In this document: positions 22,623 to 46,136 of the stretch, piece after piece | Numbering within the stretch: the stretch's first letter is position 1 | How the letters are laid out: every line of letters starts with the position of its first letter | The notes under the pieces: generated by a model | What the model was told of the DNA's origin: nothing | What the model saw: only the letters and a program-made list of their open reading frames with translations | The model's database searches: none | Made by a program: the position numbers and the translations under genes | Assembly: GCF_963676685.1 (NCBI RefSeq) | Contig: NC_092352.1 | Span: 33,480,001 to 33,544,000, forward strand | Length of the DNA: 64,000 nucleotides | Source: Mytilus edulis | Lineage: Eukaryota | Direction: 5' to 3'

Positions 22623-23986
22623 ACTTGTTTTGAAAAATATTAATTTCCGGACCGTCTTCGTTACGAACAAGTAAAATTTCCGAAACATCAAAGTTTTATA
22701 TACCGCAAGACTATAAACGGTTACTAGGACTATTATAGTAATAATACTAGTTAGTATAATTGTCCCAGCTATAAATCATCAATGTTTTAGTCAAAAGCGA
22801 TGCTTGTACAACCGACAATTAAAACAGGTGCGTTGAAGTTTCTAAGGAGACTTTTCTTGGAAACAATTTCAAACTATATATATATACAGTTGTATTATAT
22901 GGGTCATTTTCAAAAATCGAATTTTCAGTACACCCATGCTAATTTTTTTGTTTCTAATTGAAATTTCAGTTGTAATGGTTTAAATGAAAGCTTGTCGGAT
23001 TTATGATTTATTGATAATAAACCGTGACGATTACGTCTATTTTGATAAGATTAAAATGTATTTAGTCCGATTTGGGGGTATTTGTATGCGTACAGTATCC
23101 GAAAAACACATTTCAAATGATTTTTTTGCCGCTTTTCTGATCGCCTTGATATCTGCAAAAGGGACTTTTTAAGACCGTTAATAATTACTATAATGAACGA
23201 CAGTGTAGGGAAAAGAAATTTTACGGACATTTAGTGAAAACAATAAGCTGGTTCTCGACTGACTACTACACCTTGTTTATAGACAGCCGGTGATATCCGA
23301 TGAACTGTTGGTTTTGATTAGTGAAAAAAAACATGTTTCCAATCAGCCAATCAAATTGCGCGTACTATATATTGCACTTCCCGCTGTAAACATGGAAAAA
23401 TTCAATTTTATGCTACAATCCAAGAAAGTCTTATCGCAAATCAACATCTACAGATTGAAAGAGTATTCTTTTTTTAAACCATCTCAGCTTAAATGTCTGA
23501 AAAGTGCTTTAGTTGGAGATACTGTGTGTGTGTTGCCGACTGGATATGGTAAATCGTTGATTTTTGAAGCTTTGCCTTTCTTCAGTAACGGAGTTGTAAT
23601 TGTAGTGTCGCCCCTGAATTCGATTCTGTATGAACAGTTAGACCGGTATGGAGACTTTGCTATTCATTTTAATGAACTTTTGTATAAGACCAGTGGAGCT
23701 AAGATACCTTTGAACGTCAAATATGTGATCGGACATCCAGAACAATTTATTAACAAAGAAGCTTTTCAACTTCTTAAATGTGAATTAAGAGATAGAATCA
23801 CTCATATTGTGGTTGATGAAGCACATTGTGTGGTACAATGGGGAAATGGTTTCCGTGAACAGTTTTATGAACTAATCAAGCTTCGGTCATTGTTTCCTTC
23901 TGCCAAAATTTTGGCATTGACTGCTACAGCAACCAAAGAAATGCAAGCTGAAATAGTGAAAAGGTTAGGAATGAAAGGAGTAGGAA

Positions 23987-25306
23987 GGAAGCAAGTTAAC
24001 TCGTACCAACGGAAACTCGTACCATCTTAACTCGTACCAACGTTAAGTCGTACCACTGGGAAGTCGTACCATTAAAAATATATTAAAACATACGATTGTT
24101 TTGTGGTGTTTTTTCTTTCTTAAATTAATAGAAAAAAAAGTTGAATTGGGCCATTTAAAAAAAATGAGGATTTTTACTTTTTGTGGTATATTTTTATATT
24201 AGTTAAGTTTAAAATTATAACACAGGTGTTATAAAATGCAGGATAGTCAGGGCTAGTGCTTCTTGAATGTTTATTTTTCTATATGTAACAATAGTGCCAA
24301 TTATTATGTAACAATAGTGCCAGTTATCTTTGAAAACATTATTGTATTAATGTAATACCATGTGAAATCTTAAATGTAGAAGGATGATATATATCGATAT
24401 AGATGTGAATAAAACATAAGGTGTATGTGTATCTCTTGAGAGTAAAAAATAATATAAAAGTACCCAAATCTATTCAATGTAATCGATTTGGAATGATAAT
24501 TTGCACAGATAATGAATGAAAAATCTTGTAAATTAAAAAATAGGCACTATTATTAAAAGCTTTCCTTGCTTATTCACAAGGACATATCATATCCTCCATG
24601 CTATTCCGATCTGAGTTTTTATTCATACATGTACATACATGTAGTCTGGTGCTGTTCCAAGTAGTCTTCTTTTTTCTGTTTCTTGAGAAGTATTTGTTTT
24701 ACCTGTTCAGTCACTGTAAAGTGTTACAATTCATATTTAAACGCAACACATAAATAGTGACCAAAAAGGTATGGCTATCACATGAGAGAAGCTAGAAAAA
24801 AGTCAAATGTATAAATTTTAAACATTTTTGTGGGACCATGAAAATGTGGTATATAGATAGATATGCATAGATAGACCATAGAACAAATAAGCAAACAAAT
24901 TCAAAGGAGATGTACATGTAAGATGAATTATGAAAAAAAAGAGCCATGGCCAGGGGCCCTAAACTTGACAGCATTTGGTGTTGAACAGGTAAAATGTTTG
25001 CAGTGACAATAAATATAGCCTTTGTTAGAGGTGACCCAGGTCGCCTTTCTCTAAATCAGCTATATTAAACATATTTCTGGGCCAGGTTGAAAAATAAATG
25101 AAAATGACTTTAAAAAAAGCTAATAGAAATACACCAAATTTGGGAGACATCTATTTAAATGTTTGAAATAATAAGAAAGTTGACAAGAACTTTAAATAAG
25201 TTGGTACGAGTTAGCAGTGGTACGAGTTTACATTGGTACGAGTTTTTTTTAGTGGTACGAGTTGACGTTGGTACGAGTTTACATTGGTACGGGTTAACTA
25301 TAATTC
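23987..25306. mobile_element. Non-autonomous DNA element, 8-bp TSD, subterminal repeat arrays; inserted in helicase exon 1
   Basis: TSD AGTAGGAA at 23979-23986 and 25307-25314. About 5 TCGTACCA units on the left and about 6 inverted TGGTACGA units on the right. Removal restores MKGVGTIVGNMDRPNI. Confidence 0.9.
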
Positions 25307-25874
25307 AGTAGGAACTATTGTTGGAAACATGGATAGACCAAATATTAAGTTGGTGGTTTCAACAAGACCAGCAGGGTGTGGTGGAAAAACTCGTGTTGAG
25401 GACTCTTATGACTATATTTACAGTCCATTGTGTGCTGAACTTGGCAATATGAAGGAGTTATTCCCTAAGACAGTGGTGTACACAAAACTCAAGTGGTGTG
25501 GATATGGCCAGGAATTATTTATCCGATTGGATCCCGAGCTGAAGGACTATGTAGCTCAGTACCACAGCCCTTGTACTCCACAGGTTTGTGCAATTGTTTA
25601 TTATAGTATATAGAATATTGTAAGTTTGAATTTACAACATGTACTATGCCAATATAAAACTCTCCACAAGACCAAATGATAAAGAATTTTAAATAACAAA
25701 TATAGGTCTGAAACTGTATGACCTTTAACAATAAGCAAAGCCCATACTTAAATAGTATTGTGAAGCACTCAAAAAGAGTCCATCTACATTAACACTTCTT
25801 ATTTGAAGTCAATTATGCATGTCACATTCTGTAACCACATATTATGAAAAACACTGTTAAACCATAACCTTGTG

Positions 25875-26651
25875 TTGAAAGTCATATGAACAATGTAACT
25901 ACCAGTGGCGGATCCAGAAATTTTCATAAGTGGGGGCACACTGAGCAGGGGGCCGCTCCATTCAGGCTTCAGTGATTCCCTATATAAGCAACCAATTCCC
26001 CCCCCCCCCCCCCTAAATCTGATTCTGACGACTGGTGAAAAATAATGTTTATTCTATTCGTTAACCAATGCATGTACTTAACATAAACCTAAGTCTTCTG
26101 TGCACGATTTTCTACATTTCTGTATTTTACACAAACTGATCGTATAATTGTCATTTTGTTTTTTCTCTGTTTATTACGTGTATAACTAGTACACTCAGAT
26201 AACAGTTTATTTCAATGACAGATGAAAGGTCTGCGAATTGCTTCCTAAAAGCAAGCAAATAAAAAAAGTAAACTTTATCTAACTGTGAACAAATCAAAGA
26301 ATTTTCTTCAGCAAAAAGTATGTACATCTGTTTTGTAATGATAACTAATCCGTTTAGTTTTAAAAAAACATAATGCAACAGGCTATTATTTGAACTTGGA
26401 AGTATTTTTAATTATGGAATTTGAATAATTTCTTCAGCATAACACTATCTATACAAAATACATTGTATGGAAAGTGTTATGATCCACTCAAAACATTATA
26501 ATAGATTTTTTTACCAAATAAACATGGAATTTATGAAAAAAATTCCAGCACAAGAAATTATGCAAATTCCATAATTAAAAATAATTCCAAGTTCAAATAA
26601 AAGCCTGTTATGCATATTTTTTTTTAAATTTGAGGTTTCATATGACTTTAA
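25875..26651. mobile_element. MITE (AAGTCATATGAA ends) containing an internal fold-back at ~26370-26615 and a small CAGTGGCGGATCC element at ~25903-26027
   Basis: aaagtcatatgaa at the left and ttcatatgactttaa at the right. Internal arms caggct.ttatttgaacttggaa / ttccaagttcaaataaaagcctg. Confidence 0.5.
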
Positions 26652-27231
26652 AGATAACTTTAATCTTTAAAGTCATATGAAACAATGTACATGTATAACT
26701 TTTTAAAAATAATCTTAGATATCTGATTTTTTTTTATTGAAATGGAAATATATTTGTATCTTTAAGATGAAATCCAAGGTACTGAGCAGCATGGCACAGA
26801 TGGACAGCAGTATTCGTTTGTTGTTTGCAACAGAGGCCTACAGCATGGGTACAGATGCACCAGACATTAGACGTGTTATTCATGCTGGGGTACCATCAAC
26901 AATGGAAAGTATGTTATTGTTAATTTAAATTGTACAATTGTGTGTAGATCTACAATGTATATACTACATATAAAAAAGAAAGTATTATTGCCAATGAGAC
27001 AACTATCCACAAAAGACCAAAATGACAAAAAACTTTAACAAATATAGTTAACTGTATGGCCTTCAACAATGAGCAAAAGCCCATACCACATAGTCGGCTA
27101 TAAAAGGCCCATTTTTAAGGCCAAACTAATTAGTTCTTGTGTTTCTTGCATTAAAATAAGGAATAGCACATACATGTGAAACAGTTGAAAATATAATTTA
27201 TTGTAATTTTTTAACAAAAAACATTAATAAC

Positions 27232-28848
27232 GAATCCATGACAAGTCGCCCCACTGGCAAGTCGACCCACACCTAATCGGCCCACTTTAAAAAAAACCGC
27301 CCCAACCTGGATTACCAAATCGCCCCACTTTTTAGCTCACCTGGCCTAAAAGGCCATGTGAGCTTTTCTCATCACTTGGCGTCCGTCGTCGTCGTCGTCG
27401 TCGTTAACAATTTTTCAAACATCTTCTCCTCTGAAACTACTGAATGGATTTGAATGAAACTTAGCATGATTGTTCCTTAGAGTATCCTGCACAAAGTGTG
27501 TGCTTCGATTTTTGATCCGTCAAAAAACATGGCCGCCGTTACTTAAAATAGAACATAGGGGTCAAATGCAGTTTTTGGCTTATATCTCAAAAACTAAAGC
27601 ATTTAGAGCAAATCTGACATGGGGTAAAAATGTTCATTAGGTCAAGATCTATCAGCCCTGAAATTTACAGATGAATCAAACAAACCATTGATGGGTTGCT
27701 GCCACTTAATTTTAAGGAAATTTTGCAGTTTTTGGTCATTATCTTGAATATTATTATAGATATAGATAAACTGTTAATAGCAAAAATGTTAAGCAAAGTA
27801 AGATCTACAAATAAGTCAATTTGACCAAAATTGTCAATTGACCTCTTAAGGAGTTATTGCCCTTTAAAGACTTTTTCACAATTTGTTCATCATGTTGACT
27901 TACTTTAAAAAATCTTCTCCTTTGAAACTGCTGTATCAATTTCAGCCAAACTTAGGCTAAATGAGACGTTTTAGAGTTTCAGAGTATCTAGTATAAATTT
28001 TATATTTCATTTCCTTGTATGTCAAGAAACATAGCTCCTATGGCTAAAATAGAACATAGGAGAAAATGATTTTTTTTTTTGCTTTTGAAGAAAATAGGAC
28101 GATTCAAAGAACATTTAAATAAATTGAAAAGCCAAAATAATCATTGATATGAGATTAAACCAAAAAAATTCAGGTGAGCGATTCAGGCTCTTGAGAGCCT
28201 CTTGTTAAAAAATCGTCCCACTTGTGAAAAGTGTTAAATCCCGTTAATATTACTCCTGAAAACTCGCCCCACTGAATGGAAAACGATAAAATCTAGATTA
28301 ACATATTATTAATCAGGATGAATTTAGTAAAGCCAACTCGCCCCACTCATGGAAAAAGATGTTATCCCGTTGTATATAATTTAAATTCCGTGAATATTAC
28401 TCCTGCCAACACGCCCCACTTATGGAAAACGATAATATCTAGATTAATATATTATTAACCAGGATGAATGTAGTAATGCCAACTCGCCCCACTTATGGAA
28501 AAAGATGTTATCCCGTTGTATATAAGTTAAATTCCGTGAATATTACTCCTGCCAACTCGCCCCACTTATGGAAAGTAACACGGCTGGTTAGCTCTCTAAA
28601 TGTCATTTTTGTTTGATTTCAAACCATAGACAAAACTTACCAATCAATTTGTCAACAACAACAAAACCTGTTTTGACTACTTTTACTAACAAAAACACGA
28701 CACACGCTTATGGTAAATGAATGAATAGGCATTCTCTTTGATATTTACTTGAAAGAAACATTTGCCTTTCTCTGATTGCTCGTTAGTGTTGAATTGGGGC
28801 GATTAAGATTAAGGGCGACTTGCCAGTGGGGCGACTTGTCCTGCTTCC
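27232..28848. mobile_element. Non-autonomous DNA element, 8-bp TSD, TCGCCCCAC repeat arrays
   Basis: TSD TTAATAAC at 27224-27231 and 28849-28856. gacaagtcgccccactggcaagtcg is mirrored at the right end; internal ~75-150 bp tandem units. Confidence 0.88.
27329..28206 (+). mobile_element. Helentron-type element nested in the 27232-28848 element
   Basis: ttttagctcacctg...(GTC)n...caggtgagcg plus hairpin aggctcttgagagcct, inserted in a T-run. A degenerate relative is at ~54124-54812. Confidence 0.78.
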
Positions 28849-30061
28849 TTAATAACATAGCCATGCCAAATGCATGATAACAGTACATGTTTAACAACAT
28901 GTAAAAATGTTATACAGGTATTTCCTACTATAAATCACTTTTACATCAAAATTTGAAATTCAATGAAATATCAAATAACAGCAATTCTCGTCTATGACGT
29001 ACATGTATATATTATTTAACAATGACGAATCAAAAACACCTGACTAACTATTTTTATATATCATGTATACTGGTACATGTACATGGATAAACCTATTTCT
29101 TCAGTTAAAGTTATACATGTAGTAAATGGGGTATGTCACAGATAATTGTAAAATTTTGCATACAACTTTGGCTCTTAGAGCTTCAACTCAAAATCGAAAA
29201 AAATAATGCATAATTTATCTCATTTCGTTGTATCATTTGAAATGTAACTGGTTGAATTCTTGCAAAATCTTTGACATAGCCCATTTACTACTATTTGAAT
29301 TCCTTGACCTTAATCAGATAAACATCTTTGTGCATGTTCCTCAGTTTCTTGAACAACAGTGTCAATATCTATATCAAGTTTAAAAGATACTACATGGCTT
29401 AATACTTTTATCATATCAATGAGATAATAATGCATCACATGCTTTTATTAAATAAAAAAAATTTGTGGCTTTATAACAGTAAATTAAATCTCATATTTTG
29501 ACTATCACAGGTACAATTATTCATGAATGCCAATATTATTACAGTAATTATGGTTAAATAATACATTGTAACAGTCAATACACATAATACAATACATAAA
29601 TACATTGACATGTATTGTACATGTCAAAACGTATCTTCTTCAAAAGAATATTGCAGTGTTTGATTGAGTTAATACATGTATAAATATACAAAGAACTTGT
29701 CACAGAAAACAAAAAGATTCGGGTAAAATGTGTATTAAGCTGAGGTCTTTAATATTAATAGTCATTACCTCCCTTGGACTGTTCATGAGTGGAAAGATAA
29801 TTGATATCACATGGCCATAATTAAGTTTAAAATAGATAACTTTTACTTATACTTCACTTGTTTTTAAGGTTTGTTTGAGTTGAAACATCTTGTTATATTC
29901 ATTTAAGAATGATATAGATGCACTAATTTTTTAAATGTTCAAATCATATTTCTTATATAAATTTTAATATTTCTTGTCAGATAGCAACGATACAGCTTAG
30001 AAAAGAATGGGACCAGAGATAATATAATTACACAAATCAAATATTCATTGTTATACTGCAA

Positions 30062-30600
30062 TCAGCTATTTTACTATACAGATAAAGCTATACGTATAAA
30101 CGTTAGCTTTATACGTCAATGACCTCAACTCACCTATAAGCCCCGCCTACTTACAACGTCACGTCACAACCATGACAACGTGTAGTAACAATGGTCAAAC
30201 TTTTATGAATTTAAACCTGTTATGTCTTCAAATTGGTAATTTATATACCGTGTTTATCAAATGCTATTAATTAAATTCATTTTCCCTTTCTAATTCCGTA
30301 AATTGTCAATGCTTACCGCCTAGACTACGCTCATAGGGAAATACCCCAAAATGGTACCCCAAGGGGGAAATTCCAAACACTTTTTTTTTTAATAATATTT
30401 GTTTCATATTTTTATTATTTTTTTTTATTATTTTATCGATTTCAGTATAAAAACAATATACGTATAGTGTCTTGAAATATGAAATTTATTTGTATTCGGC
30501 ACGAAACGGGAAAATGCTCGGTAGAACCTCGCATTTTCCCGTTTCTAAGCCTCATACAAATAAATTTCATATTTCAAGACACTATACGTATATTGTCTAA
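30062..30600. mobile_element. Element with one long terminal hairpin (arms 30453-30596)
   Basis: 43-bp perfect arms plus an inner gaaacgggaaaatgc stem. The left boundary is approximate. Confidence 0.6.
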
Positions 30601-31524
30601 CTGTGTAAACTTTTTAAATATTAAGTTTGTGACATTCTGTCATTAAGGGATACTTCTTGTACAACAACTTTTTATTTTTTTTGAAAAAGTAAAAAATGTA
30701 TACACATATAAGTAAAAAATAATATTTGAGTAATCTCCCCTTAATTTTCTTTAAAATTTACTCAAATAAGTAAATCTTTCTTACAATCCTACAAAAACTC
30801 TCAAGTTTATCTTAACCACTATCTTAACATGTGAATTTACATGTAAGACAAGAGACCTATCAAAATGAGCAAGTCCTCAATACTGTTAGCATTAACAAAC
30901 TACTTCCATTGATCCTACAAAAACAGATACCAACAGTAACAACTTGCAATTGTTAGGTTTAAATGTGTTATATGAATTTATTTACATCTTTTAATTATCA
31001 ACTTTGTCAGTTGAAACCTTTAAGATTTTTTCTCAGTACTGTTTTTTTTTTATAAAGACCACTACTATCTGTGTATGAAATAAGCCCAGCCTCCCTTCTT
31101 ATACATTGTACTTCATATAATATCTAATATTTAAATAAGGAATATAAAGGGACTTAACACCACTACTAACTGTTTATGAAATAAGCCCTGTCTCCCTACT
31201 AACCTAATATGAAATACACAGTCTACAGACACTTTTACTCAATCATATTCCTAGAAATGTGTAGGTGGTAAGATAAAACTGATTATTGATTTTGTGTGGC
31301 ATGAATAATTAATACTAAATGTATATGCATATAATATACATTGTATATATATATATATACACACAATTGGGAATTTTACAGCAAAAACACATCTCCATAT
31401 TTTCATTGCAGCATACATACAGGAAATTGGAAGAGCAGGTCGTGATGGAAACCCAGCAATTGCCAAATTGTTCTTTAACAAAATGGACATTTCTTCAGCT
31501 GCTAAGGGTATGACTGATGGCATG

Positions 31525-32763
31525 CAGTGTTCTCCCCAGGCCCTTAAAGGACCACGGACCCGCGATGTATAATTTTCTGCCGCGGTGGTATCGTTCTTGC
31601 CGCGATGTATAATTTTTTTCCGTGGTGCTAAAGTTTTCGGTAAAAAAATCGTATTAAAATCGGTAAAGTTTCAGATGACTTCAACTTTACATCAAAATTG
31701 ACCAGTTCTAACCAGTTTAATCCAGTATTGACAAGATGATTGTTTACACCACGTGATCGATTTACCTGTTGAGGTTAACCTTGATGATTGGATTTAATCG
31801 ATGTACATGATTCTTTTGTGTTTTAGTTAATTAAGAGATCATAATTTAAATAACAGACTTGTGAGGGACAAGCAGACATTTGTTAATGAACCCTATTGCG
31901 CCAGTCTCAAGTCAAAATAATTTGCCTTTTAGGAATTAATTGTGGAGTTACTTCCCCTGATTTTGCTAATTACAAATAAATGCTCCTCACATATAATTTC
32001 TCATTGCAAATAAAAATAAAGTACAAATTGAATGCAAAATTATATTAGAATGTTACATTAAGGATGAAAACATTCTTAGAACATACCAACAAAAATATTT
32101 TGCAAATTATTTTTGAGAATCATACCATTATTGATGCACAGACATATTATAATAAATGGGTAATTTATACGATGTGAAAAATATCTGACTGTAACAGGTC
32201 TAAAAAGCCTACTGCCACAACTCTAATACATTCCCATGCAGGTCTAAAGCTAGGGATGAACCTTGTGAGTAGAAAACTCTTTTAAAGTACTCTCCATGTC
32301 TGTAACAAAGTATTAATCATAAAAACAAATTTGTTGTTGTCTAAAAGAATCAGATCTAAAACTATGGAAAATAGTTTTTAATTTACTGAAGGTTCTGTAT
32401 CAAAAATCTTGTTCAAAGTTCATTGTTATGGGGAATGTGTAGTGTAACTACAAGTATCGGGACAAAATGGCTTGATCAAAATATAAGAAGTGTCTTTAGC
32501 TTAAAGACTAATTGTGCTTTCTTTTATTTATTCTTCAAAGATATTAAAGTATACAAACTGTTTATTAATTTACTTTTTCTACCAATAATTTTCTGACCCT
32601 AAGTCCTACAACACAGTTCCACAGTAAACAAAACAAAGGCAAACAGGTAATGACAAAAAGTAACAAGAAAAAAATAAGCGACGCAAAGCAACACAAAATA
32701 TTGTAAAATTCATTTCGTCACGCGTTACCCTGGTGCTATCCAAAAATCCTGGGGAGAACACTG
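31525..32763. mobile_element. Non-autonomous TIR element with 5-bp TSD, inserted in helicase exon 3
   Basis: Perfect 16-bp TIR CAGTGTTCTCCCCAGG. GCATG is duplicated at 31520-31524 and 32764-32768. Removal restores AKGMTDGMRNYC. Confidence 0.92.
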
Positions 32764-35700
32764 GCATGAGAAACTATTGCCAAAGTAAAGAATGCCGAAG
32801 AGACTACATTTGCACTCACTTCGGATTCAACAATTGTTTTGATAAAGAGAAACATGATTGTTGTGACATATGTGAACTTAAATGTACATGTGATAGTTGT
32901 TTTGCTCAACTTACAGAGAACATAGAGGAACATCCAGTATGTGAAACCAAAAAAGTAACAGTTAAAAGGAAAACTGTCACAGAAATAAATCAGTTACTTT
33001 GTGAATATTTTGAAGCTGAAAACACTTCAGTGGAAATGCCGTCAGCAAGTTTATATACAGGACTTGATTCTTTGTTAGCTGCCAAAATAGCAAAGAATTA
33101 CAACATTTATGACAACACTGATGTCATTAAATCAGATTTTCCTTTCATTGCTGAAGAAGTTTCACTTAACATTTCTCTTATTGTAAAAGCTATTGTGGAA
33201 AATGAAAAGAAATAGCTATATTTTGCAGCCGTGTATATTGAACTCTTAGAACTTCAGTATTCAGTGATATTGTTGGCTTTTTTCAAATCTACCTCTACCC
33301 TTTTTTATGATAGATAATAAAATTATGCCTTCCCAAATCACATACATACTAACTTAGGAATTCTGTTTTTAAATTTTCAATTTGGCTTTATCAAATATGT
33401 GTATTAAATTATAGCAGAACATGATATGCAGAACAGGATGCAACCCTCTGGCGCACCTTGAAAAGTCGTAAGGTTGTAAGTCCCTGGCGTAGATGGAATA
33501 TGCTCGTAAACTTGACCTGCTGCAAATCAGAGTGTGGGGGAGAATGGGGGATTTTATTTTAAATTATGCTGGTTGATAAGTATGTATGTTGTTTGGGTGT
33601 TTGGTGATATATCATTAGTATATCAGTTGTGTTTTTTTTTAAATTTTCTCTTTAAACACAAACACTGTTTAAAGGATTAAATATATAGTGTGCTTCTCAT
33701 TTTTTCCTGTTTCAGTTATTAAGAAAAGTCCATGAAAAAATTGATTGATATCTTATATTATACTTTGCAGTTTAATCAGAATTCCCCAAAACTAAATATA
33801 TTGGGTCGCAACTACTAAAAGGCATTTTTAGACACTGTGTATGCTGTTATTGCACCCTGCTTGAACGGTGCTTTCAAGTTTATACCTGTATGGACAAAAC
33901 CATAGCTTCTTAAAAAATAAAGACTGTCAAAGTGGAGCACGGTTTGCACCTGTGTACTATGATCACATTCTTGTTACTTGATGAATTTGTGTTTTAATGG
34001 TATAAATGATCATGTCAAGGGCAACTACTTAACCTTAAGCAATAACATATTACTATATACATGTAGTCTTATGAAAGTCAAAACCACAGGAATTGAACAT
34101 GTATTCTATCTTTAAGACAGAAATTATAGCAATAAAATAAAGTTTACTTATTTTCCAAGTTCAGTAGCAAATTTTATTTTCTGCTGCATGATCCAGTTTC
34201 TAAATAGGTTCATGTCAAGCTGATTTTCCATTTTTCTTGAAATACCTGGGAAAGTGTCATGTTGGCGCCCTGGGTCAGTTTCAAAAGGTCGTAACTGTCG
34301 AAGATCGCTGATCATGTCTAGTTCATCATGAATTGAGCTCAAGTCAGAATGCCTTTTACTCCTGATGACAACATTGGAAACCCTATCAAACTGTTCGGAA
34401 ATATCAGATATTGCTGAAATTGCACTTGTCCTTTTGGATATGAAATCATCTGTTTTGTTGGAAAACATGTGTTTTAAATGTTTTTTTACACATTTGACAA
34501 TATATTCCATTTGAAGGTCACAAGGTATGTGACTGTCTGTTTTCCCTTTTGTATTTACAAAGAGTGCATAAAATTCCTCTGATGCTTCTTGTTCTGACAA
34601 AATACAATACTGGTGTACAAGCAACCTCATTATTTCATATGCATATTTTGACATCCAATTGTTGGCTTTAAAATGCAGCATGGTCACTTTTAAAAGACGC
34701 AAACCTCGTTCTCTATCTGGTGTTTTACATAGGCTTAACAGCGCTTTAAAATGAACTCCTAGTTCAAGAACTAGATGTCCATAGGATTGGACTTTGTCCT
34801 CCTTTGGTGGTGTTTTCTTTTTTTTTATAACAAAGGATTTGAAGTTACCGTTTGCCAATTTCACCGTTTGCCAATTTCAGACGTAGAACTTCGCCATCTT
34901 CTGTAAAACAAGAATTTTTATGTATGAAAAAAGAATGCAAGTCACATATTAAAACAAATCGGTATAATATGCATAAACTATCGAGGTTAAAGGGTAAAGA
35001 GCCTGTAGTTCAGTGGTTGTTAGTTAATGTCTTTTATATTTGGTGCTTATCTGCTTATGTTATGAAATTTCCACATATCACATGTACATAGTACTTGACC
35101 ACATTTATACAGTCCAGTGACTACATGAAAAGAAGAAGAAAGATATTTTGTAATGTTAATTTCTCCATATTATAAGTAATAAGATGACCATATTTTCATG
35201 GATCAGTGAACAAGGTTAAGTTTCTTTGGTTAAGTCCATATCTCAGATGCTACATGTAATAGAAATAAAGGGCTACTATATATATTTGGTGTATAGAATG
35301 TTTTTAAGGTGTAAATGTCCAAAGTTGAGTTTTGGTATTTTTTTTCCCTACCGCTTGTAATACAATGTATTATTAATATTTCCCTAGAATTGTTTTACAA
35401 TGTACATGTCAGTCTGATTCTGGTTTTATTTGACCCTGACCTCATTTCCATTGTTCATTGCTAAATGTAAAGTTTTTGTGTTTGTTCAGTCATAAACAAT
35501 TATAAGCATTACATGTAAGTCAACTAAATTTGGTGTATGGAATGATTGTACAGTGTACATGTACATGTACAATGTATTTCTGGTTTGGTTTACCAGACCT
35601 TGACATAATTTTCTTGGATCATGTTAAGATAAGTTGAAGCTTGCAATCAAGGTTTTTATTCAGGACTATCAACATAAAGTCAATTGTTAGTTAAGTAGAT

Positions 35701-35940
35701 GAGACATTTTATGATTAGGTTCAGACTGAAAAAGACTTTTATACGACTGCAAAAATTAAACAAGTTTTGGTCGTACATGTATATTGGTATCACATTGTCA
35801 GCGTCGTCCAAAGACAGATGATTCCCAGATAACAACTTTAATTTAGTATAAATAAATAGAAATTAATAAAATTTTAGGTTTATTACCACTAAAAGAAGGT
35901 TGGGATGGATTTTAGAGGTTATGGTCCCAGCTGTTCATGA

Positions 35941-38036
35941 TTTTTATTATACGACCGCAAATTTTGAAAAAATTTTCGTCGTATATTGCTATCACGTTGG
36001 CGTCTGCGTCGTCGTCGTCCGGCGTCCGAATACTTTTAGTTTTCGCACTCTAACTTTAGTAAAAGTGAATAGAAATCTATGAAATTTTATCATAAGGTTT
36101 ATGACCATAAAAGGAAGGTTGGTATTGATTTTGGGAGTTTTGGTCCCAACATTTTAGGAATAAGGGGCCAAAAAGGGCCCAAATAAGCATTTTCTTGGTT
36201 TTCGCACCATAACTTTAGTTTAAGTTAATAGAAATCTATGAAATTTTGACACAAGGTTTATGACCACAAAAGAAAGATTGGGATTGATTTTGGGAGTTTT
36301 GGTTTCAATAGTTTAGGAATAAGGGGCCAATAAAGGGCCCAAATAAGCATTTTTCTTGGTTTTTGCACAATAACCTTAGGTTATGTAAATGGAAATCTAT
36401 GAAATTTAAACACAATGTTTATGACCACAAAAGGAAGGTTGGTATTTATTTTGGGAGTTTAGGACCCAACAGATTAGGAATTAGGGGCCAAAAAGGGACC
36501 CAAATAAGCATTTTTCTTGGTTTTCGCACTATAATGTTAGTATAAGTAAATACAAATCTATGAAATTTAAACACAAGGCTTATGACCATAAAAGGAAGTT
36601 TGGTAATGATTTTGGGAGTTTTGGTCCCAACAGTTTAGGAAAAAGGGGCCCAAAGGGTCCAAAATTAAACTTTGTTTGATTTCATCAAAATTGAATAATT
36701 GGGGTTCTTTGATATGCCGAATCTAACTGTATATGTAGATTCTCAACTTTTGGTCCAGTTTTCAAATTGGTCTACATTAAGGTCCAAAGGGTCGAAAATT
36801 AAACTTAGTTTGATTTTGACAAAAAATGAATCGGTTGGGTTCTTTGATATGTTGAATCTAAAAATGTACTTAGATTCTTGATTATTGAAGTTTTTTTGGT
36901 CCAGTTTTCAAATTGGTCTACATTAAGGTCCAAAGGGTCCAAAATTAAACTTTGTTTGATTTCATCAAAAATTGAATCCTTGGGGTTCTTTGATATGCCA
37001 AATCTAACTGTGTATGTAGATTCTTCATTTTTGGTCCTGTTTTAAAATATCAAATTCTACATTAAAGTCCAAAGGGTCCAAAATTAAACTAAGTTTGATT
37101 TTAACAAAAATTGAATTCTTGGGCCTCTTTGATATGCTGAATCTAAACATGTACTTAGATTTTTGATTATGGGCCCAGCTTTCAAGTTGGTCCAAATCAG
37201 GATCTAAAATTATTATATTAAGTATTGTGCAATAGCAAGTCTTTTCAATTGCACAGTATTGTGCAATGGCAAGAAATATCTAATTGCACAATATTGTGAA
37301 ATAGCAATTTTTTTTTTAATTAGAGTTATCTTTCTTTGTCCAGAATAGTAAGCAAGAAATATCCTATTTGTGCAATAGCAAGAATTTTTTTTAATTGGAG
37401 TTATCTTTCTTTGTCCAGAATCAACTTAAATCTTTGTTATATACAATATACAATGTATATACACTTTTTACTACCAACTGATAAATTTAAATAATCTTTA
37501 CCATTCAGTGATAACAAGCAGTTTTTTTACATCTTAATATTTTATGATGTATTTAAATGAGTAGTTATTGTTGCAAACTCCATTAGAAATTTGAATTGAT
37601 ATCAGTTTTGAAAAAGGGAAACGGGGATGTGAAAAAAAAGGGGGGGGTTAAATTTTTCTCATTTCAGATTTCATAAATAAAAAGAAAATTTCTTCAAACA
37701 TTTTTTTGAGAGGATTAATATTCAACAGCATAGTGATTTGCTCAAAGGCAAAAAAAACCTTTTAAGTTCATTAGACCACATTCATTCTGTGTCAGAAACC
37801 TATGCTGTGTCAACTATTTAATTTTAGATTTAAAAAGTTTGAAGAAGAAATCTTTAATTGATTTGTAAAATCTTGGCATTTGTTTTGTGTAAAAAAAAAC
37901 CATGTAATGTCAAAAATTTGATCACAATCCAAATTCAGAGCTGTATCATGCTTGAATGTTTTGTCCATACTTGCCCCAACTGTTCAGGTTTCGACCTCTG
38001 CGGTCGTATAAAGCTGCGCCCTGCGGAGCACCTGTT
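35941..38036 (+). mobile_element. Helentron-type element with two internal ~140-bp tandem arrays, nested in an older relative (~35737-38410)
   Basis: tttttattatacgaccgca...(GTC)n...tgcggtcgtataaa plus hairpin gctgcgccctgcggagc. The outer degenerate ends ttttatacgactgc and tgcggtagtattaggc flank it. Confidence 0.78.
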
Positions 38037-39433
38037 TTTTTTTATTTTTGTTGTTGGGGATTGTTTGGAAAAGGGGGTGTGGGGGAGAACTTTTTTTTGA
38101 TGGAGTGGGAGAGTGTCAATTCCCAACAGCAAAGTGAATTGCACAAAGTATTTTTAAACTGTTCATATTCTTTTTTCATTATTTTTCAAATTTAAAATTT
38201 TTGAAAAGTTTCAATAAGAAATCTTCAATTGCACAATATTGCTCATTAATTTGGTAAAATTTTTGACCACATTTAAATATTTTGGTGTCAGTAACCTATA
38301 TTATGGCAAAAAATTTATCACAATCCAAATTCAGGTAGTATCAAGCTTGACTATTGTGTCCAAATTTGCCTTAAATGTTCAGGGTTCATCCACTGCGGTA
38401 GTATTAGGCTACACTCAGTGAAGCATTTTATTATTTAATATTGTTAGACCTACCATGAACTTCTTCCTCAGAGTAAGACCTGCAATTATCACTTTCATTG
38501 CACCATACCATTTTATCAACTAGATCACCAAATATTGATAAAATCCATTCCTTCTTCTCATTATCATTTGTAAACTGACTAGGTGGTTCATGTCTATTTA
38601 TTGTTGGGGCAGAAGTAGGGTTTTCCATTTCAAAGAAAGTCATAACAGCTTCTGTTATGTATGCATCTGTGAATGATATTATGAAGTCTTTGTCAGCATC
38701 ATAATGTTCATTTACATTGACATTCACAGTGGTTCTTAGTAAACGATTTGCCTCACATTTCATAGTGCCCATTTCATTTACACTTTGATCTTTGAAAAGT
38801 TGTTTCATGATCAATTTAACATAGTTCATGCAGAGATGAAATAATTCGAATGTAATCGGAGACAAGTGATCAAAACGTTCCTCTGCTGTTATACCACCAG
38901 CTCTTAAGCATTTGCTCCCAGAAAATCTTTCTCTTGTCAACTGATCACCACCTATCAAAACTTTAACTGTGTCATTATAGTCTATGTTAGCTTTACCAAA
39001 GCTCTCCCTTAAAAATGACTCATAAAAATCTAAAATTTTAACAACCTCATCATATTTTTGTTCATTATAATGAAGAACAGGTAATGGAATGACCTTGTTT
39101 TTTGTTTTCAATTCCTCAGTCAAGGTTCCATGAAAAAAGTTTTCAAATGGCTTACAAAATTCCTTGAAGAATGGTATGTGTTTAGAAGCCACTTTTAAAA
39201 TGTGGACACTATAGTCTTCTCTTAGTAGATGCCAATCATTTCTGGATGGTAAGAAAGTTTCCACTGATGCATATCTGTAGTCCAGCTGAAATAAATTGAT
39301 AATCCAAAATGAAGGTAAAAATATGGTAACACTTTTATTTTTATTGTCAGTCTTATAATTATACTAGTATTGACCATGCCTGTGGTAAATACCAGAAAAT
39401 AATGGTCAATTGAAATTTTTGATAGGTCATTAG

Positions 39434-39679
39434 AGCAAATTTCCTAATGCATGTAGAGCAAGACTTTGGTTAACTTGCTTGCTTTGTTTGTATATTGTAC
39501 AGTTGTCGTTAGAATAATGTCCAATACAATTTAAATATAATTTATATAGGTTCAACTATGCCTTTATATATAGTTTGGATATATGTTAATCTTAAACACA
39601 AAGCATATGTAAACGTTTATACAAACAAAGCAAACAAGTCAACCAAAGTTTTATACTACAAGCATTAGGAAATTAGCTA
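39434..39679. mobile_element. MITE/fold-back with ~60-bp imperfect arms in transposase intron 2
   Basis: agcaaatttcctaatgc..actttggttaacttg.ttgctttgtttgtata is mirrored at 39618-39679. Confidence 0.65.
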
Positions 39680-42600
39680 TACGATACAAACCACTACCTG
39701 TTCAATAACTGTCAGTAATGAAATAATGAAAGTGTTCCAGTCTTATTTTATGCATAAATTTATATTTTTATTTTAAATTTTAAATTAAGAATTGAAATTG
39801 GGAGTGTGTCAAAGAGACAATAACCCAACCAAAGAGTAGACCAAAGGCCACCAATGGGTTTTCAATGTAGGGAGAAACTCCCTCACCCAAAGGCTTGCTT
39901 CAGCTGGTCCCCAAACAAAAATGTATACTAGTTCAGTGATAATGGATGCAAACTGAACTCTGAAATGTACACAAGAAACTCAAATTAAAAATCATATAAG
40001 ACTATATATAACAAAAAGAAGATTGCAAATTTATCAGAAGGAGATATCAGGAATTTATATTGACTTTTACTAAGTCAATACGTTATAGGACCTGTTATAT
40101 GATACTGACACTCGTCAAAAGTCCATAATTGATAAATAATATTCAAGTGCAAGATAAAAACTGTTTCGTCCCTGCCAAGGGAACTCATCAGGTGGCTTTT
40201 AAATGGCTACCACGACAGTTATTTAATTTTAATTTACTTTCTTTTTTTTTCTCTTTTTTTTTTATACAAATATCTAAATATTTGTATATCCATATTTTCA
40301 TAGTGTTACTAAAGCTGAAGAGCAACATTTATGGTAAATTTTTCTTACAGCATAAACACTTTAAAATATGTTGAAAAACTCAATTAAAGGTAATTTGTAA
40401 CATACTTGAGGTTTAATACTGGAAAGCAAATCAAATGATGTGTTCTGAATGATGCATGCAGATCCAAATGCATGATGCATATGTGCATGGTTGTCTTTTC
40501 TTTCATCGTGCACATTTGTCATCCAGTTAATATTATCCCCTACAAGTCTAATTCTTTTTCCTGATTTTAAGGCATCTATGACTGCAGAATTAAAGTGACC
40601 TCCATACTTGTCTAATATGGTAAGGCTATGTCCATAACTCATGCATGCCCCAATTGAATGTAGACGATCAAATACCTGTAAAAATTGAAATTTCAATAAT
40701 TTTAGTCTCTTTAAGAAAGTGTTTGATGAATAAATTGCTTAAAAGTAACTCTTCAATTCACAAGATGTATGCTTATACAACTAGGTCCATTGTCATTTTT
40801 CGGATAGTCTCATTGGGAAATGTACCTTTTCTTAATATTTTAACATCAAGAATTGGTATAGTTAGACAATAAGGTTGATAGTAAACCTGAAGTTGCGTCA
40901 CTGTAATTACATGTGTGTGTTTGATTACATTTAAAGATGCTAAGAATCATATGTGGCTTTATTATGGAAGTTGGTTGTTGTCTATCATATTTTTTTTCAA
41001 CATAAATCATGCTATAATGGTATTCTTAAAGTTATTTAGATTCTTTTGCAATTGTTATTTGGTTTTTATGTCTATGCCTTATGGTATGAATTTGCTCATA
41101 GTTGTAGACTGAATTGAAGGGTGACTTATGGATGCTTATATCCACATTTGTATGGTGAATAGTATGTTTGATTGGTTATCATACCACTATTATTTTAGTA
41201 ATCAATGATTCATTAAATGGGGGGAAAAATAGGTAGTGATTTTTTTATCTTTTTTTTTTATATTGAATGGGAGATAACTCTTATACAAATTTGAGTAAAA
41301 TAAGAATTTGTAAAGTTAAAAATACTACGAGTTTCTCCAATTTAATGAACAGCAAAGATAAATTTGTTCTTGTTGGCTTAGCCAAGTTCTGTAAAATTGT
41401 AATGTCAATTTACAAATGATATTTACCTTCCCATTTATTCATGCATTTGTAAATATGTTTGTTCATGCATTATATCTTATTTGTTATATTGTTGTACTAT
41501 CATGCCTCATGAGAGGCCTTTAGTGAAATGAAATGTTTCATTTTTCATGTTTCAAGAAAACAAATTAGTTGATTTAAAACTCAAAGCAGGTACATTTAAC
41601 CCAAATTTGATTTGATTTGTCATATGCTTTTTGGGGAATAAAGTTATATTTTCCCTATTGTAATTTTATTATAATTTTATATATATTTTATTTTAAGTCT
41701 AAATTTATGGACTAAGTAATTAAGTAATTGTGTTGGAATTTGTATCATAACTTATTTAGAAATTTGAAATAAAAATCGCAGTAAATTCATAGTAACCCCC
41801 CCCCTTGCCACCCCCTTTAGGGCCTTAGTGTATATATATTAACTTTAATTTACCTTTTGATCACACAAGTTGTCAAACAATATTGTATTAATCATGTGCT
41901 GAACCTTGCTCAATTCTTGGTTGCGACTCTGTGCAAGCAAAGAGTAAATAAACCCTATCCTCGGGACCATTGATGTAATTCGATCAGACTTTGTTTTTTC
42001 TGTCAAGTTATCTGGTAGCATAAAACTCAATATTGTGCGACATAAAACTGGGAATTCATCACAAAGTTCTTCTACAATTTGACTCCAATTAAAATTTATC
42101 ATATCCTCAAATGATTTCCCATTCAATACACTAAGTTTGCCTCTTTTTCTGTTTTTTAAAATATCATGCTGGTTGGATAATATTTTCATCAGTTCATCAG
42201 TTATAAGATGTTTGAAGGAATCATACTTTAAAAGAGTTTGAATAAGTGCAGATCTGGATCCCAGCGGCAGAACTGACACGATTTCAGCTAATTCTACTGG
42301 TGATAAATTATCATATTGTTGTTGTTTGACTATTATTTTTTTCAAACTTTTCACTGCTAATGTCTCTTCTTCTTTGGGTAAAGTTTCTTTTGTAGTCTTA
42401 ATTTTTGATCTCTTCCTGGGTGTACTAACAGCACTATAGATGTGATCATGACATTCAACATTTATAGGTGTATCCTTAAATAATTCTTTACTACATGTAA
42501 CTGTACTATTTGATTTGTTTTTCCTATTAAGAGTAAGACTATTTGTTTCAATTTCAATTTCAGGTGTAGACAGTGATATCCCAGAATCGTTAAGTGTATC

Positions 42601-43780
42601 ATGATGCTTGGGTCTGATTGGCGTGCATGTAATATTTGATATGTCCCCGAGCTGTTTTCTCACAGTGTTACAATTTTGTGGTGTTGAAATATTACTGGAA
42701 GTTGACATGTGTGTTGATTTCGGTGATGAAGGTGTAGGATTTTCAACATTTTCTCCATTGTTACTAAGTTTTTTGGCAGGGTTTGTATTTTCATCTGTAA
42801 GACAACGTTTGGGTGATATCAAATGAAAATTTTGATAACATTTAAATTTGAATTCTCTGACACTATTGTCAAGACTTGACAACTTTCGCTCACATGGTCT
42901 GCATATGGCACCGTCAACCACATCAATTTCTCCATATTTTAATAAAAGTTGAGCAATTCTTTTCTTTTGTCCATGACTTGAGTCTATCAATCTCCATTCA
43001 ATTTTTTTCTCTTTTTGTATTTTACAAACCACGCATATGTTCAGGTTTGTTTTTCGTGGTGACGGCATTTATTGAAGACAAAGTACGATTATGATATTTC
43101 ATGACATAAGAGTTATACATAGTATGCATCAGTAATTTCTACTGTTTCAGTGTCAGTTCATTATTTTTCTGTGATCTGAATTTCTTTATTAGCAATACTA
43201 GCAGTATTTATCTAAAAAATCGTGTCGTCTGTTTGTTTACATTTTCTCCATTACTAAATGTTGCGTGTATATATATTAAAGTTGATTTATAAGGTTTACA
43301 TGTAATAATGTCTTCTGCTTCTATCTTTACAATGTATATTACTGATTTTTTCTTCTTGTCTGATTCTAAATTTCTTACAATTCTTGTTAATTCTTAAAAA
43401 ATACTATCGTCTGTTGTTTACATTTTCGTTAATATTCCGGATGTTGTACAGTGACGTTGCTATGTAACATAGTAACGTGAAATCTCGTTAAAATCTCCAG
43501 GGCAAAATTTTGCCCTAAAATCGGGCCGTACCGGTTGTTTAAGTGAAGCGTAATACAAGCGGATTCCAGTTTATGAAAACAATAGAGGGTTCTTTTTTTC
43601 ATGTCTATGCTGGTCAGTACCAACCATTTTGATTAATTACACCAACAGTATACTTGTATAAAAAAAGTGCAATAACGTGTTGGAAACCAAATTCACAACA
43701 GAAAACCATAATCACTTCACCAAAGGGAGCAGTTATTTCACAACAGCATTCAAAAATGAAGAAATTTATCTATCCTGTTA

Positions 43781-46136
43781 TAGATAAGATTTATAAGATA
43801 AGATAACTTTATTAGCACTAACACATTGACAATAAATGGTTATGGCAACAAATTAAAGACTAACTACAATAACATATATACAATGAAGGAGTGACAGTGG
43901 ATAATTATGAGAGAAATATATAAAAAATAAATGAGAAGCATATACATTATTACAGAAATCAAGTACCTTTTAATAATGAGTTTCTCACCAACAAGCATTC
44001 ATTCAAATAGTTGACAACAATTTTTAATATTGTTTGGGAATTACTATTTAGAATTGATAGAAGCAAGTTATATGATAAGGAAGGAAATTTGTTGTTCAAT
44101 AGAACATTATTTAATTTTTTAATAAGGTTATCTCTCACATATTTATAGGAGGAACATTTTAAAAGAAAGTGAAGTTCATCTTCAATGTCTCCATTGTTGC
44201 AGCAAAGACATACCCTACTCTGCTTTGGTATTTTTAGATATCGCCCTCTTTCAATAGATAAAGTATGAGCACTTAACCTCAATTTACATAATGTTGATCT
44301 ATCACTTTTGGATTTGCATTGATCAACATACGAGGGTCTTTTATTTGGTTTATAAAGTATATTAAAAAAGTTCAATTTTTTATTTTGATTGATGTCAGTC
44401 TCTTGCTTTTGGAAGGCTATATCATTGATTCTCTCTTGAATGGGTTTTAAATACATCTTAATATCAATAGGATTTAGATAAATAAAATGAAATCCAAGTC
44501 TTGAAATGAGATTTTTCATATTTATTATCCAAGAGTTATTTTTTTTCAGTTGCTTTATATATTTTTAGGGCAAGTGAATTATTTGATTCAAGTATATGAA
44601 GCCAATATTTTATTGCTGAAAATTCTATTCTGGTATATAAAGGCAATCTATTTAGCTCGGCTAAACATGCAGCATTTGATGCTTTACAATGTATTCCTAG
44701 AATTTCGTTAATAAATTTATACTGCAAGTATTCAAAGGGATCTGAATCCCTGTGTTGTTTGCCTATTCCCCATACTTCACTACCGTATAGAGCAATAGGC
44801 ACAACTAGGGAGTCAAATAATTTTTCTAATAGCTTGCATTGGTTATTTAGTCCAATTGTTTTTTTTATTTTAAAAAGTGCTTTTCTACCCTTTTCAACAA
44901 GCAATGAGCTGCACAGATTTAGATTTCCTGTGTGCTGCAGTGTCATGCCAAGGTAGCAGTATGATTTGACAGTTTCCAGGAATTCGTTATTACATTTAAA
45001 AAAATTATTATGGGTTTTTCCATTTGAGTTAAATATAATGACTTTTGATTTGTTTATGTTGACTTCTAGTTTCCAGCATTTACAAAACTCACTAAGAACA
45101 TTTAAAGCTGTTTGTAGTCCCTTTTCAGAATTTGATAATAAAATTATATCATCTGCAAATAAAAGGGAATTTATTGTTGTATCTCCAATTACAATGGGAT
45201 CTGTATTAGCATCTTGGAGACTTTTTACCAAATTATTTATGTACTGATTAAATAATAAAGGACTGAGAACATCTCCCTGTTTAACGCCACGGTTGGAGAT
45301 AAATTCTTCACTGAGACCATTTTGGAATTTAATTCTACATGTAGTATCGTCATACATAGAATGAATTATATTAAAAAGTTTACAGGGTAATTTAAGTTCT
45401 AAAAGGATATAAAATAATCCATTTCTCCAAACTGTGTCAAAGGCCTTTCTGAGATCAACAAAGGCAGCAAACACCTTCTGTTTCTTATTTTTCTTTTGTT
45501 CTATAATACATTTCAAGGTGAATATGTGATCTGAGGTACGGGATCCAATTTGGTTTTCACTAATAATGTTGTGTTCATTCATGAATTTTGTAATTCTCAT
45601 ATATATAATTTTATTGAATAATTTTCCAAGATTGGAGGTTATAGAAATACCTCTGTAATTTGAAGGGTCTAGCTTATTGCCCTTTTTGTGTATTAATGAA
45701 ATAAAACTTTCATTCCATACCTTAGGAAATGTTCCTTCTTTGAAGATTAGGTTAAATAATTTAGTTAAAGGGTCAACTAGTACAGGTATACCATATTTAA
45801 TCATTTCATTTGAAATCAAGTCCTTTGCACTGGATTTGCCATTTTTTAAGGTTTTAGAGGCTTTGATTATTTCATCTGATGTTATTGGTTGGTTATAGGA
45901 CATATTTATATTATTGTTTTTTAGTGCATTTATTAGCTCATCTAATTTTTTAAGGATAGTTTTGTGAAATTTATTGTCCTTTGGTTGAGCTTCACAAGAA
46001 TTTAAATTTTTGAAGAAGTTATAGAATGTTTGCTCGTCCAGTTTTTCGGTAGTATTATTTTCTGATGCTCGTTTCAATTTATTAAGTAAGTCCCAGAAGG
46101 ATTTAGGGTCACTTTTGATATTATTGGACAGATCAG
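43781..46136 (-). mobile_element. 5'-truncated non-LTR retrotransposon (RT plus C-terminal Cys/His knuckle)
   Basis: ORFs 44536-46077 (NYRGIS, DLRKAFDTV, GVKQGDVLSPLLF, LFADD, YLG) and 43959-44519 (CLCC..EDELHFLLKC) are joined across an A-run frameshift. AATAAA plus (TCTTA)n tail. 13-bp duplication ATCTATCCTGTTA at 43768-43780 and 46137-46149. Confidence 0.93.

Follow-up and report, generated by a model that had tools for sequence, protein, structure and literature searches.

The section of PMC10045372 that deals with AcademH elements, citing Kojima 2020, describes them as encoding a helicase and as generating target-site duplications (TSDs) of 9–10 bp, in contrast to the 3–4 bp found in AcademX. 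A bivalve-specific amplification of Academ elements, with 100 curated full-length consensus sequences, is reported in the part of Martelossi et al. 2023 (PMC10294476) concerned with this superfamily. RecQ helicases are also carried by some lineages of Kolobok (KolobokH and Kolobok-1_CCri), and in Kolobok-1_CCri the helicase is encoded on the complementary strand (PMC9587614). The window analyzed here is a stretch of 64,000 nucleotides from Mytilus edulis (C9:33480001–33544000; assembly of 1.37 Gb with ~31% G+C). Positions 23244–43573 of this window very probably represent a full-length, now defective cut-and-paste DNA transposon of the AcademH type, with genes for a DDE transposase and for a RecQ-family helicase. 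The element is an additional member of a published class and does not define a new one. A first-pass annotation of the same DNA had already assigned it to AcademH, and this assignment is supported by the 9-bp TSD, the carried helicase, and the DUF6589 domain, rather than by a direct comparison with Academ sequences.

The boundaries of the element are exact (23244–43573, 20.3 kb). It is flanked by the 9-bp duplication TGAAAACAA at positions 23235–23243 and 43574–43582, so that the exact TSD reported in the first-pass annotation is present on both sides. Genome-wide, at least 40 matches were obtained with the left end (200 bp), starting at base 1 of the query, which corresponds to position 23244, and at least 40 with the right end (200 bp), stopping at base 200 of the query, which corresponds to position 43573. 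Sixteen short derivatives, 215–1,429 bp in length, have both ends in the correct orientation. Their TSDs vary in sequence, with two of them readable as 10 bp; the duplication is exact over 9 bp in nine of the sixteen, differs by one base in four, matches at seven of nine positions in two, and is absent in one. A genome-wide search for copies of the ends bearing 9-bp TSDs of their own had been suggested as a check of the initial proposal, as had a search for an empty site in other haplotypes or species; the former gave a positive result, and empty sites were found among paralogues of the host repeat in this genome. Mobility is thus indicated by termini common to multiple copies as well as by paralogous empty sites.

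The empty sites were found by joining the segment 22844–23243 to the segment 43583–43982. The joined sequence aligns uninterrupted over the junction with paralogues L050–L054, at 84–88% identity, and each of these contains a single TGAAAA(A)AA. These paralogues act as empty sites, showing both the insertion and the 9-bp duplication. Since the flanks are the two halves of one copy of an abundant repeat, the 20.3 kb were inserted into a pre-existing repeat. The left half of this host repeat (22896–23243) matches hundreds of paralogues at 84–88%, and its last 9 bp are the left TSD; the right TSD (43574–43582) and the right half of the interrupted repeat together occupy positions 43574–43781. The host site (22896–23243 and 43583–43781) is itself an abundant interspersed repeat, with several hundred candidates at 84–88%, and the copy in the window is devoid of ~195 bp, near position 23197, that are present in the paralogues.

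The two ends of the element are markedly asymmetric. Consensus sequences of the ends were built from 26 distinct left and 20 right ends. The claim of imperfect inverted ends of ~55 bp made in the first-pass annotation has to be abandoned, as the inverted repeat comprises only the outermost 8 bp (TAARCTGG), with seven of the eight positions matching (TAAGCTGG versus TAAACTGG), and positions 9–60 of the two consensuses are aligned equally well in 30% of shuffles. The helicase-side terminus (23244–23303, + strand) starts with the repeat TAAGCTGG at 23244–23251, followed by ~40 bp that are conserved across the copies of the family; the consensus of the left end reaches at least 90% over most of its first ~40 bp, and that of the right end over ~22 bp. 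On the other side, the region 43069–43573 (− strand) comprises the 5′ untranslated region of the transposase gene, its presumed promoter, and the transposase-side terminus, in which the 8-bp repeat is found at 43566–43573 (TAAACTGG on the − strand). Contigs of probable RNA runs extend to position 43438 in this region. The conservation of each end among copies, combined with the difference between the two, shows that the asymmetry is intrinsic and characterizes the family, as had been suspected from the single copy. A family with a ~45%-identical transposase has, 286 bp upstream of its transposase gene, a terminus that is identical to the transposase-side end at 18 of 22 bases, and the chance expectation of such a 22-bp match is estimated at ~0.003 in the sequence searched. 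Conserved termini were found in one clear case (L043), and not otherwise, in the examined parts of related loci. The remaining 22-mer near-matches at these loci, located within coding sequence, were rejected as chance matches.

The transposase gene is encoded on the − strand and runs toward the helicase gene, in the convergent orientation already described in the first-pass annotation. Protein searches were run exon by exon, and the joined reading frame was examined by a local script. Exon 1 (41854–43068, 405 aa) contains no Pfam domain, and a CxxC...CxxC pair in its N-terminal part may be a zinc finger. Exon 2 (40406–40675) carries a GDN motif with the first conserved aspartate. Exon 3 (38454–39285) encodes the N-terminal half of DUF6589 and includes a GGDQLT motif with the second conserved aspartate, whereas the D..E......K motif, with the candidate third catalytic residue, is found in exon 4 (34148–34900). 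All three introns are of the GT..AG type; intron 3 (34901–38453, − strand) is inflated by a segment of ~2.1 kb (35921–38049). The DUF6589 domain, which we take to be the transposase domain of Academ and which had been expected from the start, is matched in Pfam by the exons of the − strand with scores of 5e-23 and 4e-16. The protein aligns in four blocks to residues 20–979 of an uncharacterised 980-residue protein of Saccoglossus (acorn worm). The length of ~1017 residues given in the first-pass annotation is correct (1,017 aa) once a 16-bp duplication private to this copy is left out, although the protein is not readable intact in the window.

The splicing model of the transposase is backed by contigs of two sequencing runs, X16 and X17, which contain the exon joints 40672>41851 and 39285>40406, as well as a loose end at 38454 that matches positions 34871–34900. 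Bins unique to the introns have zero depth in both X16 and X17 and are covered in the DNA run X8. Relative to the window, the X16 contig contains 35 differing letters in 833 and each of the X17 pieces 0–2, and near-identical DNA is present in sequencing runs under three organism labels. Spliced transposase contigs in these probable RNA runs indicate that the family is transcribed and spliced somewhere.

The fold of the transposase was modeled on the homologue P0001 (572 aa), 55–58% identical to exons 2–4 of the window, using AlphaFold2 with an alignment of 54 sequences. The predicted local distance difference test score (pLDDT) of the model is 92.3, and its predicted template modeling score (pTM) is 0.91. 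The top match found with VIA-align is the P element transposase (Z 11.2, 280 residues aligned), followed by Hermes (Z 9.8, 282 residues), by retroviral integrases (Z 8–10), and then by ISCth4, IstA, Tn5, Mos1, RAG1, and Mu; the matches above Z 6 are mostly DDE recombinases. The transposase core is accordingly predicted to adopt an RNase H-like DDE fold in which a large helical insertion precedes the last catalytic helix. An RNase H fold of the partner protein had been named beforehand as a test of the proposal, and it is predicted here for its homologue. Near-invariant residues, in the numbering of P0001, include Asp18 (in GDN, strand 1), Asp172 (in GGDQLT, after strand 4), and Asp450, Glu454, and Lys461 in the helix 449–465, with Glu454 being the candidate for the third catalytic residue. 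All of these are retained in the window. Also near-invariant is an ExxH motif (Glu205 and His208 of P0001, in PITFExFH of exon 3 in the window), located ~33 residues past the second catalytic aspartate. Together with the structural matches to the P element and hAT, this motif may provide a hint to the position of Academ among the DDE superfamilies.

The helicase gene occupies the other half of the element, on the + strand, and starts with an ATG at position 23392, 148 bp from the terminus. The region just upstream of this ATG (23340–23391, + strand), as read from the sequence, contains a TATA-like run and a pair of CCAAT boxes and may represent its promoter. Exon 1 is present in two parts. The first one (23392–23986) carries motif I (GYGKS), motif II (DEAH), and motif III, and the second one (25315–25600, with an approximate 3′ boundary) carries the DRPN region and motif IV. 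They are followed, on the same strand, by an exon with motif V that belongs to Helicase_C (26728–26916) and by an exon with motif VI (QEIGRAGRDG, 31405–31527), both with approximate boundaries. The last exon (32766–33215, with an approximate 5′ boundary) contains zinc-binding cysteines of the RecQ type and the C-terminal tail. Exon 1 matches Pfam DEAD at 6e-17, exons of the window also match Helicase_C, and a weak match to RecQ_Zn_bind is found in the related copy L041. All PDB matches of exon 1 belong to the RecQ family (BLM, WRN, RecQ, RECQ1, RECQ5, and RECQ4), with E-values between 1e-15 and 3e-22, except for RECQ4 (4e-9), which agrees with the RecQ-like helicase proposed earlier for the + strand. 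The similar E-values over the RecQ chains indicate that the helicase is not near any single host paralogue. Its pieces are colinear with a 383-residue clam protein that has DEAD, Helicase_C, and RecQ_Zn_bind, and the summed lengths of the exons give an estimate of roughly 570–600 residues for the ancestral helicase. In public annotation, related copies are called 'recQ' or 'ATP-dependent DNA helicase RecQ-like [Mytilus edulis]', which is the fate that the first-pass annotation had foreseen for this gene, namely to be annotated as a host RecQ.

Matches to the helicase and to DUF6589, 4.7–10.7 kb apart and always arranged tail to tail, are found at 13 further loci of the genome. These are located at C2:38.28 Mb, C2:75.18 Mb, C13:1.32 Mb, C13:8.10 Mb, C7:0.91 Mb, C14:20.33 Mb, C14:29.94 Mb, C12:73.51 Mb, C4:41.61 Mb, C4:61.48 Mb, C1:46.17 Mb, C8:89.14 Mb, and C9:30.53 Mb, and they show 28–59% protein identity to the proteins of the window. 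At C2:38.28 Mb and C7:0.91 Mb the frames are open in the matches to both genes. Relatives of both proteins also co-occur in distant animals, such as Saccoglossus. Pairing at 13 loci with such a range of identity rules out a chance neighbor and makes a single recent capture unlikely. The proposal that the two genes form one mobile system is thus upheld by an insertion with a TSD, by mobile ends, and by these further pairings.

No second full-length copy of the exact family was seen among the genome-wide matches of ends and proteins, including the eight 10-kb loci that were examined; most closely related to it are a deletion derivative of 1,429 bp on C3 (99% identity) and degraded copies on C11, C13, and C8. 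On C8, two right ends with identical scores (C8:44054089–44054278 and C8:44062047–44062236) are separated by 8 kb and have the same orientation. The start of the transposase is missing from both, owing to a shared 530-bp deletion, and the arrangement suggests a degraded copy that has undergone segmental duplication. The database protein P0076 (1,066 aa) combines MULE/Mutator transposase domains with a C-terminal region that shares 53% identity with the DUF6589 exon, and it probably results from a gene prediction that merged nested transposons.

Both genes of the copy in the window are broken, and the element, while full-length, is defective and dead. Exon 1 of the helicase is split by a nested insertion of 1,320 bp (23987–25306), flanked by the 8-bp duplication AGTAGGAA at positions 23979–23986 and 25307–25314. 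In the related copies L002, L004, and L045, position 23986 is joined directly, and in frame, to position 25315, whereas in the window the helicase frame encounters a stop at 24031, within the nested insertion. Positions 24498–25191 of this insertion correspond to a repeat of ~694 bp with 955 candidates in the genome, most of the scored copies being 96–99% identical; the insertion is hence composite, and the repeat is a very young and very abundant element.

The reading frame of the transposase is lost after 18 codons of exon 4, with a stop at 34845–34847 after residue 790 of 1,017. The frameshift is caused by a tandem duplication of a 16-bp unit (34847–34878) that is private to the window copy, the unit being present only once in L047/L063 and in L062, two further copies of this family. 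The truncation costs the transposase its last ~227 residues, including the D..E..K motif. The segment 35921–38049 (~2.1 kb, including the tandem repeats 36036–37187) is absent from the copy on C11, so that, together with the 1,320-bp insertion, ~3.4 kb of the 20.3 kb can be shown to result from later insertion or expansion. The large introns of the helicase also contain other repeats. Tandem arrays are found in the introns of both the transposase and the helicase (36036–37187 and 28234–28575), with periods of ~160, 140, and 73 bp. With both genes broken, any movement of this copy would now require proteins supplied by other copies.

Several points weigh against the interpretation of the locus as an AcademH-type transposon with an expressed, DDE-type transposase. 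Homology with Academ is deduced from the DUF6589 match and from features of the class, and not from a comparison with Repbase. A Foldseek search of the P0001 model against the PDB gave no match at E ≤ 0.001, and the fold is assigned from VIA-align scores of Z 8–11, rated by the notes of the tool as moderately above background, with a list of matches that is nevertheless consistent. That runs X16 and X17 represent RNA is a guess. No exon reads were detected in the 6% sampled of the RNA run X22, which carries the species label of the best DNA runs, a result that is not evidence of silence. Finally, the 16-bp duplication that breaks the transposase frame could be a variant of the assembly or of the haplotype.

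Two other explanations have to be considered. The helicase might be a paralogue of a host RecQ that lies beside a DUF6589 transposon, or was once captured by it, and that plays no role in transposition. It is indeed a bona fide RecQ-family protein with all of the motifs, and the names given to related copies in public annotation point in the same direction. However, the gene is located inside an insertion bounded by TSDs, with its start codon only 148 bp from the terminus, and the same pairing in the same orientation recurs at the 13 other loci at 28–59% identity, so that any capture must have been ancient and the gene must have been retained since. That relatives of both proteins are found in the same distant animals, such as Saccoglossus, is also at variance with such an origin, which we consider very improbable. 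A plain host RecQ gene was rejected as well, since the helicase is multi-copy, is contained in the TSD-bounded insertion, and is always paired with DUF6589.

The element might instead belong to another superfamily that carries a helicase or generates 9-bp TSDs, namely Kolobok (KolobokH, Kolobok-1_CCri) or MuDR/MULE. In favor of the former, RecQ helicases are present in Kolobok lineages too (PMC9587614). In addition, a C/DxxH motif is common to Kolobok, MuDR, and the group that includes the two best structural matches, the P element and Hermes, and an ExxH motif (Glu205 and His208) is conserved past the second aspartate in the present transposase. MuDR elements make duplications of 9–10 bp, which would fit the TSD observed here. 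On the other hand, the signature of Kolobok is a TTAA target duplication, and TTAA is found in none of the 15 duplications seen, the TSDs of the derivatives being varied 9-mers. The exons and five full-length homologues match neither MULE (PF10551) nor THAP in Pfam, but only DUF6589; a sixth homologue, P0076, hits MULE and is likely a fusion or a mis-prediction. The inverted repeat, with its 8 bp, also differs from the long repeats of MuDR. Membership in either superfamily is thus very improbable, and an AcademH-type element remains the preferred interpretation.

The ancestral unit of this AcademH-type element consisted of two convergent, intron-bearing genes placed between dissimilar conserved ends that share only the 8-bp TAARCTGG, with the helicase gene (~570–600 aa) next to one end and the four-exon gene of the 1,017-residue transposase next to the other. 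By analogy with the DDE family, the transposase would bind both ends, excise the element, and integrate it through an attack with a 9-bp stagger, the repair of which would yield the 9-bp duplication. The helicase may act on the DNA of the ends, by unwinding or remodeling it, or it may guide the repair of the donor gap. Because it has been kept together with the transposase over many diverged families, the helicase is probably a required cofactor. The copy in the window landed in an interspersed repeat and then decayed through the 1,320-bp insertion, the ~2.1-kb segment, and the 16-bp duplication.

Since the ends share only 8 bp and each of them is conserved by itself, the helicase may load at one particular end. 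It could then be an obligate, end-specific cofactor, opening the DNA there so that a single DDE transposase is able to handle two unlike ends. This seems to us rather unlikely, but if true, it would make the mechanism of AcademH a hybrid of helicase and DDE chemistry. At least 14 paired loci in the mussel genome, together with spliced transcripts, would make the role of the helicase testable. The present locus supplies exact termini, a contig-backed intron–exon model of the transposase, and, through a homologue, a high-confidence fold of the DUF6589 core. Since this copy is dead, experiments on the role of the helicase should begin from its intact relatives. A further consequence concerns gene annotation: transposon genes account for at least part of the RecQ-like gene models in mussels, among them those called 'recQ' in Mytilus edulis and M. 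coruscus, and such models should be left out of counts of host DNA-repair genes.

The surroundings of the element are dense in mobile DNA. Just to its right, an open frame of 513 residues (44536–46077, − strand) encodes a reverse transcriptase domain (RVT_1, 8.6e-40), and positions 43793–43973 contain a further repeat, 94–99% identical to many loci.

Compared with known systems, the transposase resembles those of the P element and of hAT (Hermes) (PDB 6p5a and 8edg) in having an RNase H-like core whose last catalytic helix is preceded by a large helical insertion, but the sequence identity is only 9%, and the P element and Hermes have no helicase partner and make 8-bp duplications. Kolobok shares with the element the combination of a DDE transposase with a RecQ helicase, whereas the 9-bp TSDs, the lack of TTAA, and a different Pfam family set the two apart. 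The Academ elements of bivalves come from the same class of hosts; their curated average length is 5.6 kb, compared with 20.3 kb for this copy, and the part of PMC10294476 devoted to them mentions no helicase. The resemblance is closest to AcademH, with a DDE transposase and a separate RecQ-like helicase of superfamily 2 (SF2) joined in one unit in an animal host, and with TSDs of 9, occasionally 10, bp. A duplication within the 9–10 bp of AcademH is found in this copy (exactly 9 bp) and in most of the derivatives, the RecQ-family helicase is located between the termini, and a DDE core with an RNase H-like fold is indicated by the P0001 model and by the conserved residues. The copy differs from AcademH in being defective and swollen by nested insertions. 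AcademH elements are also said to combine short inverted repeats with multi-exon genes in a convergent layout, and the element of Mytilus edulis agrees with them in all three respects.

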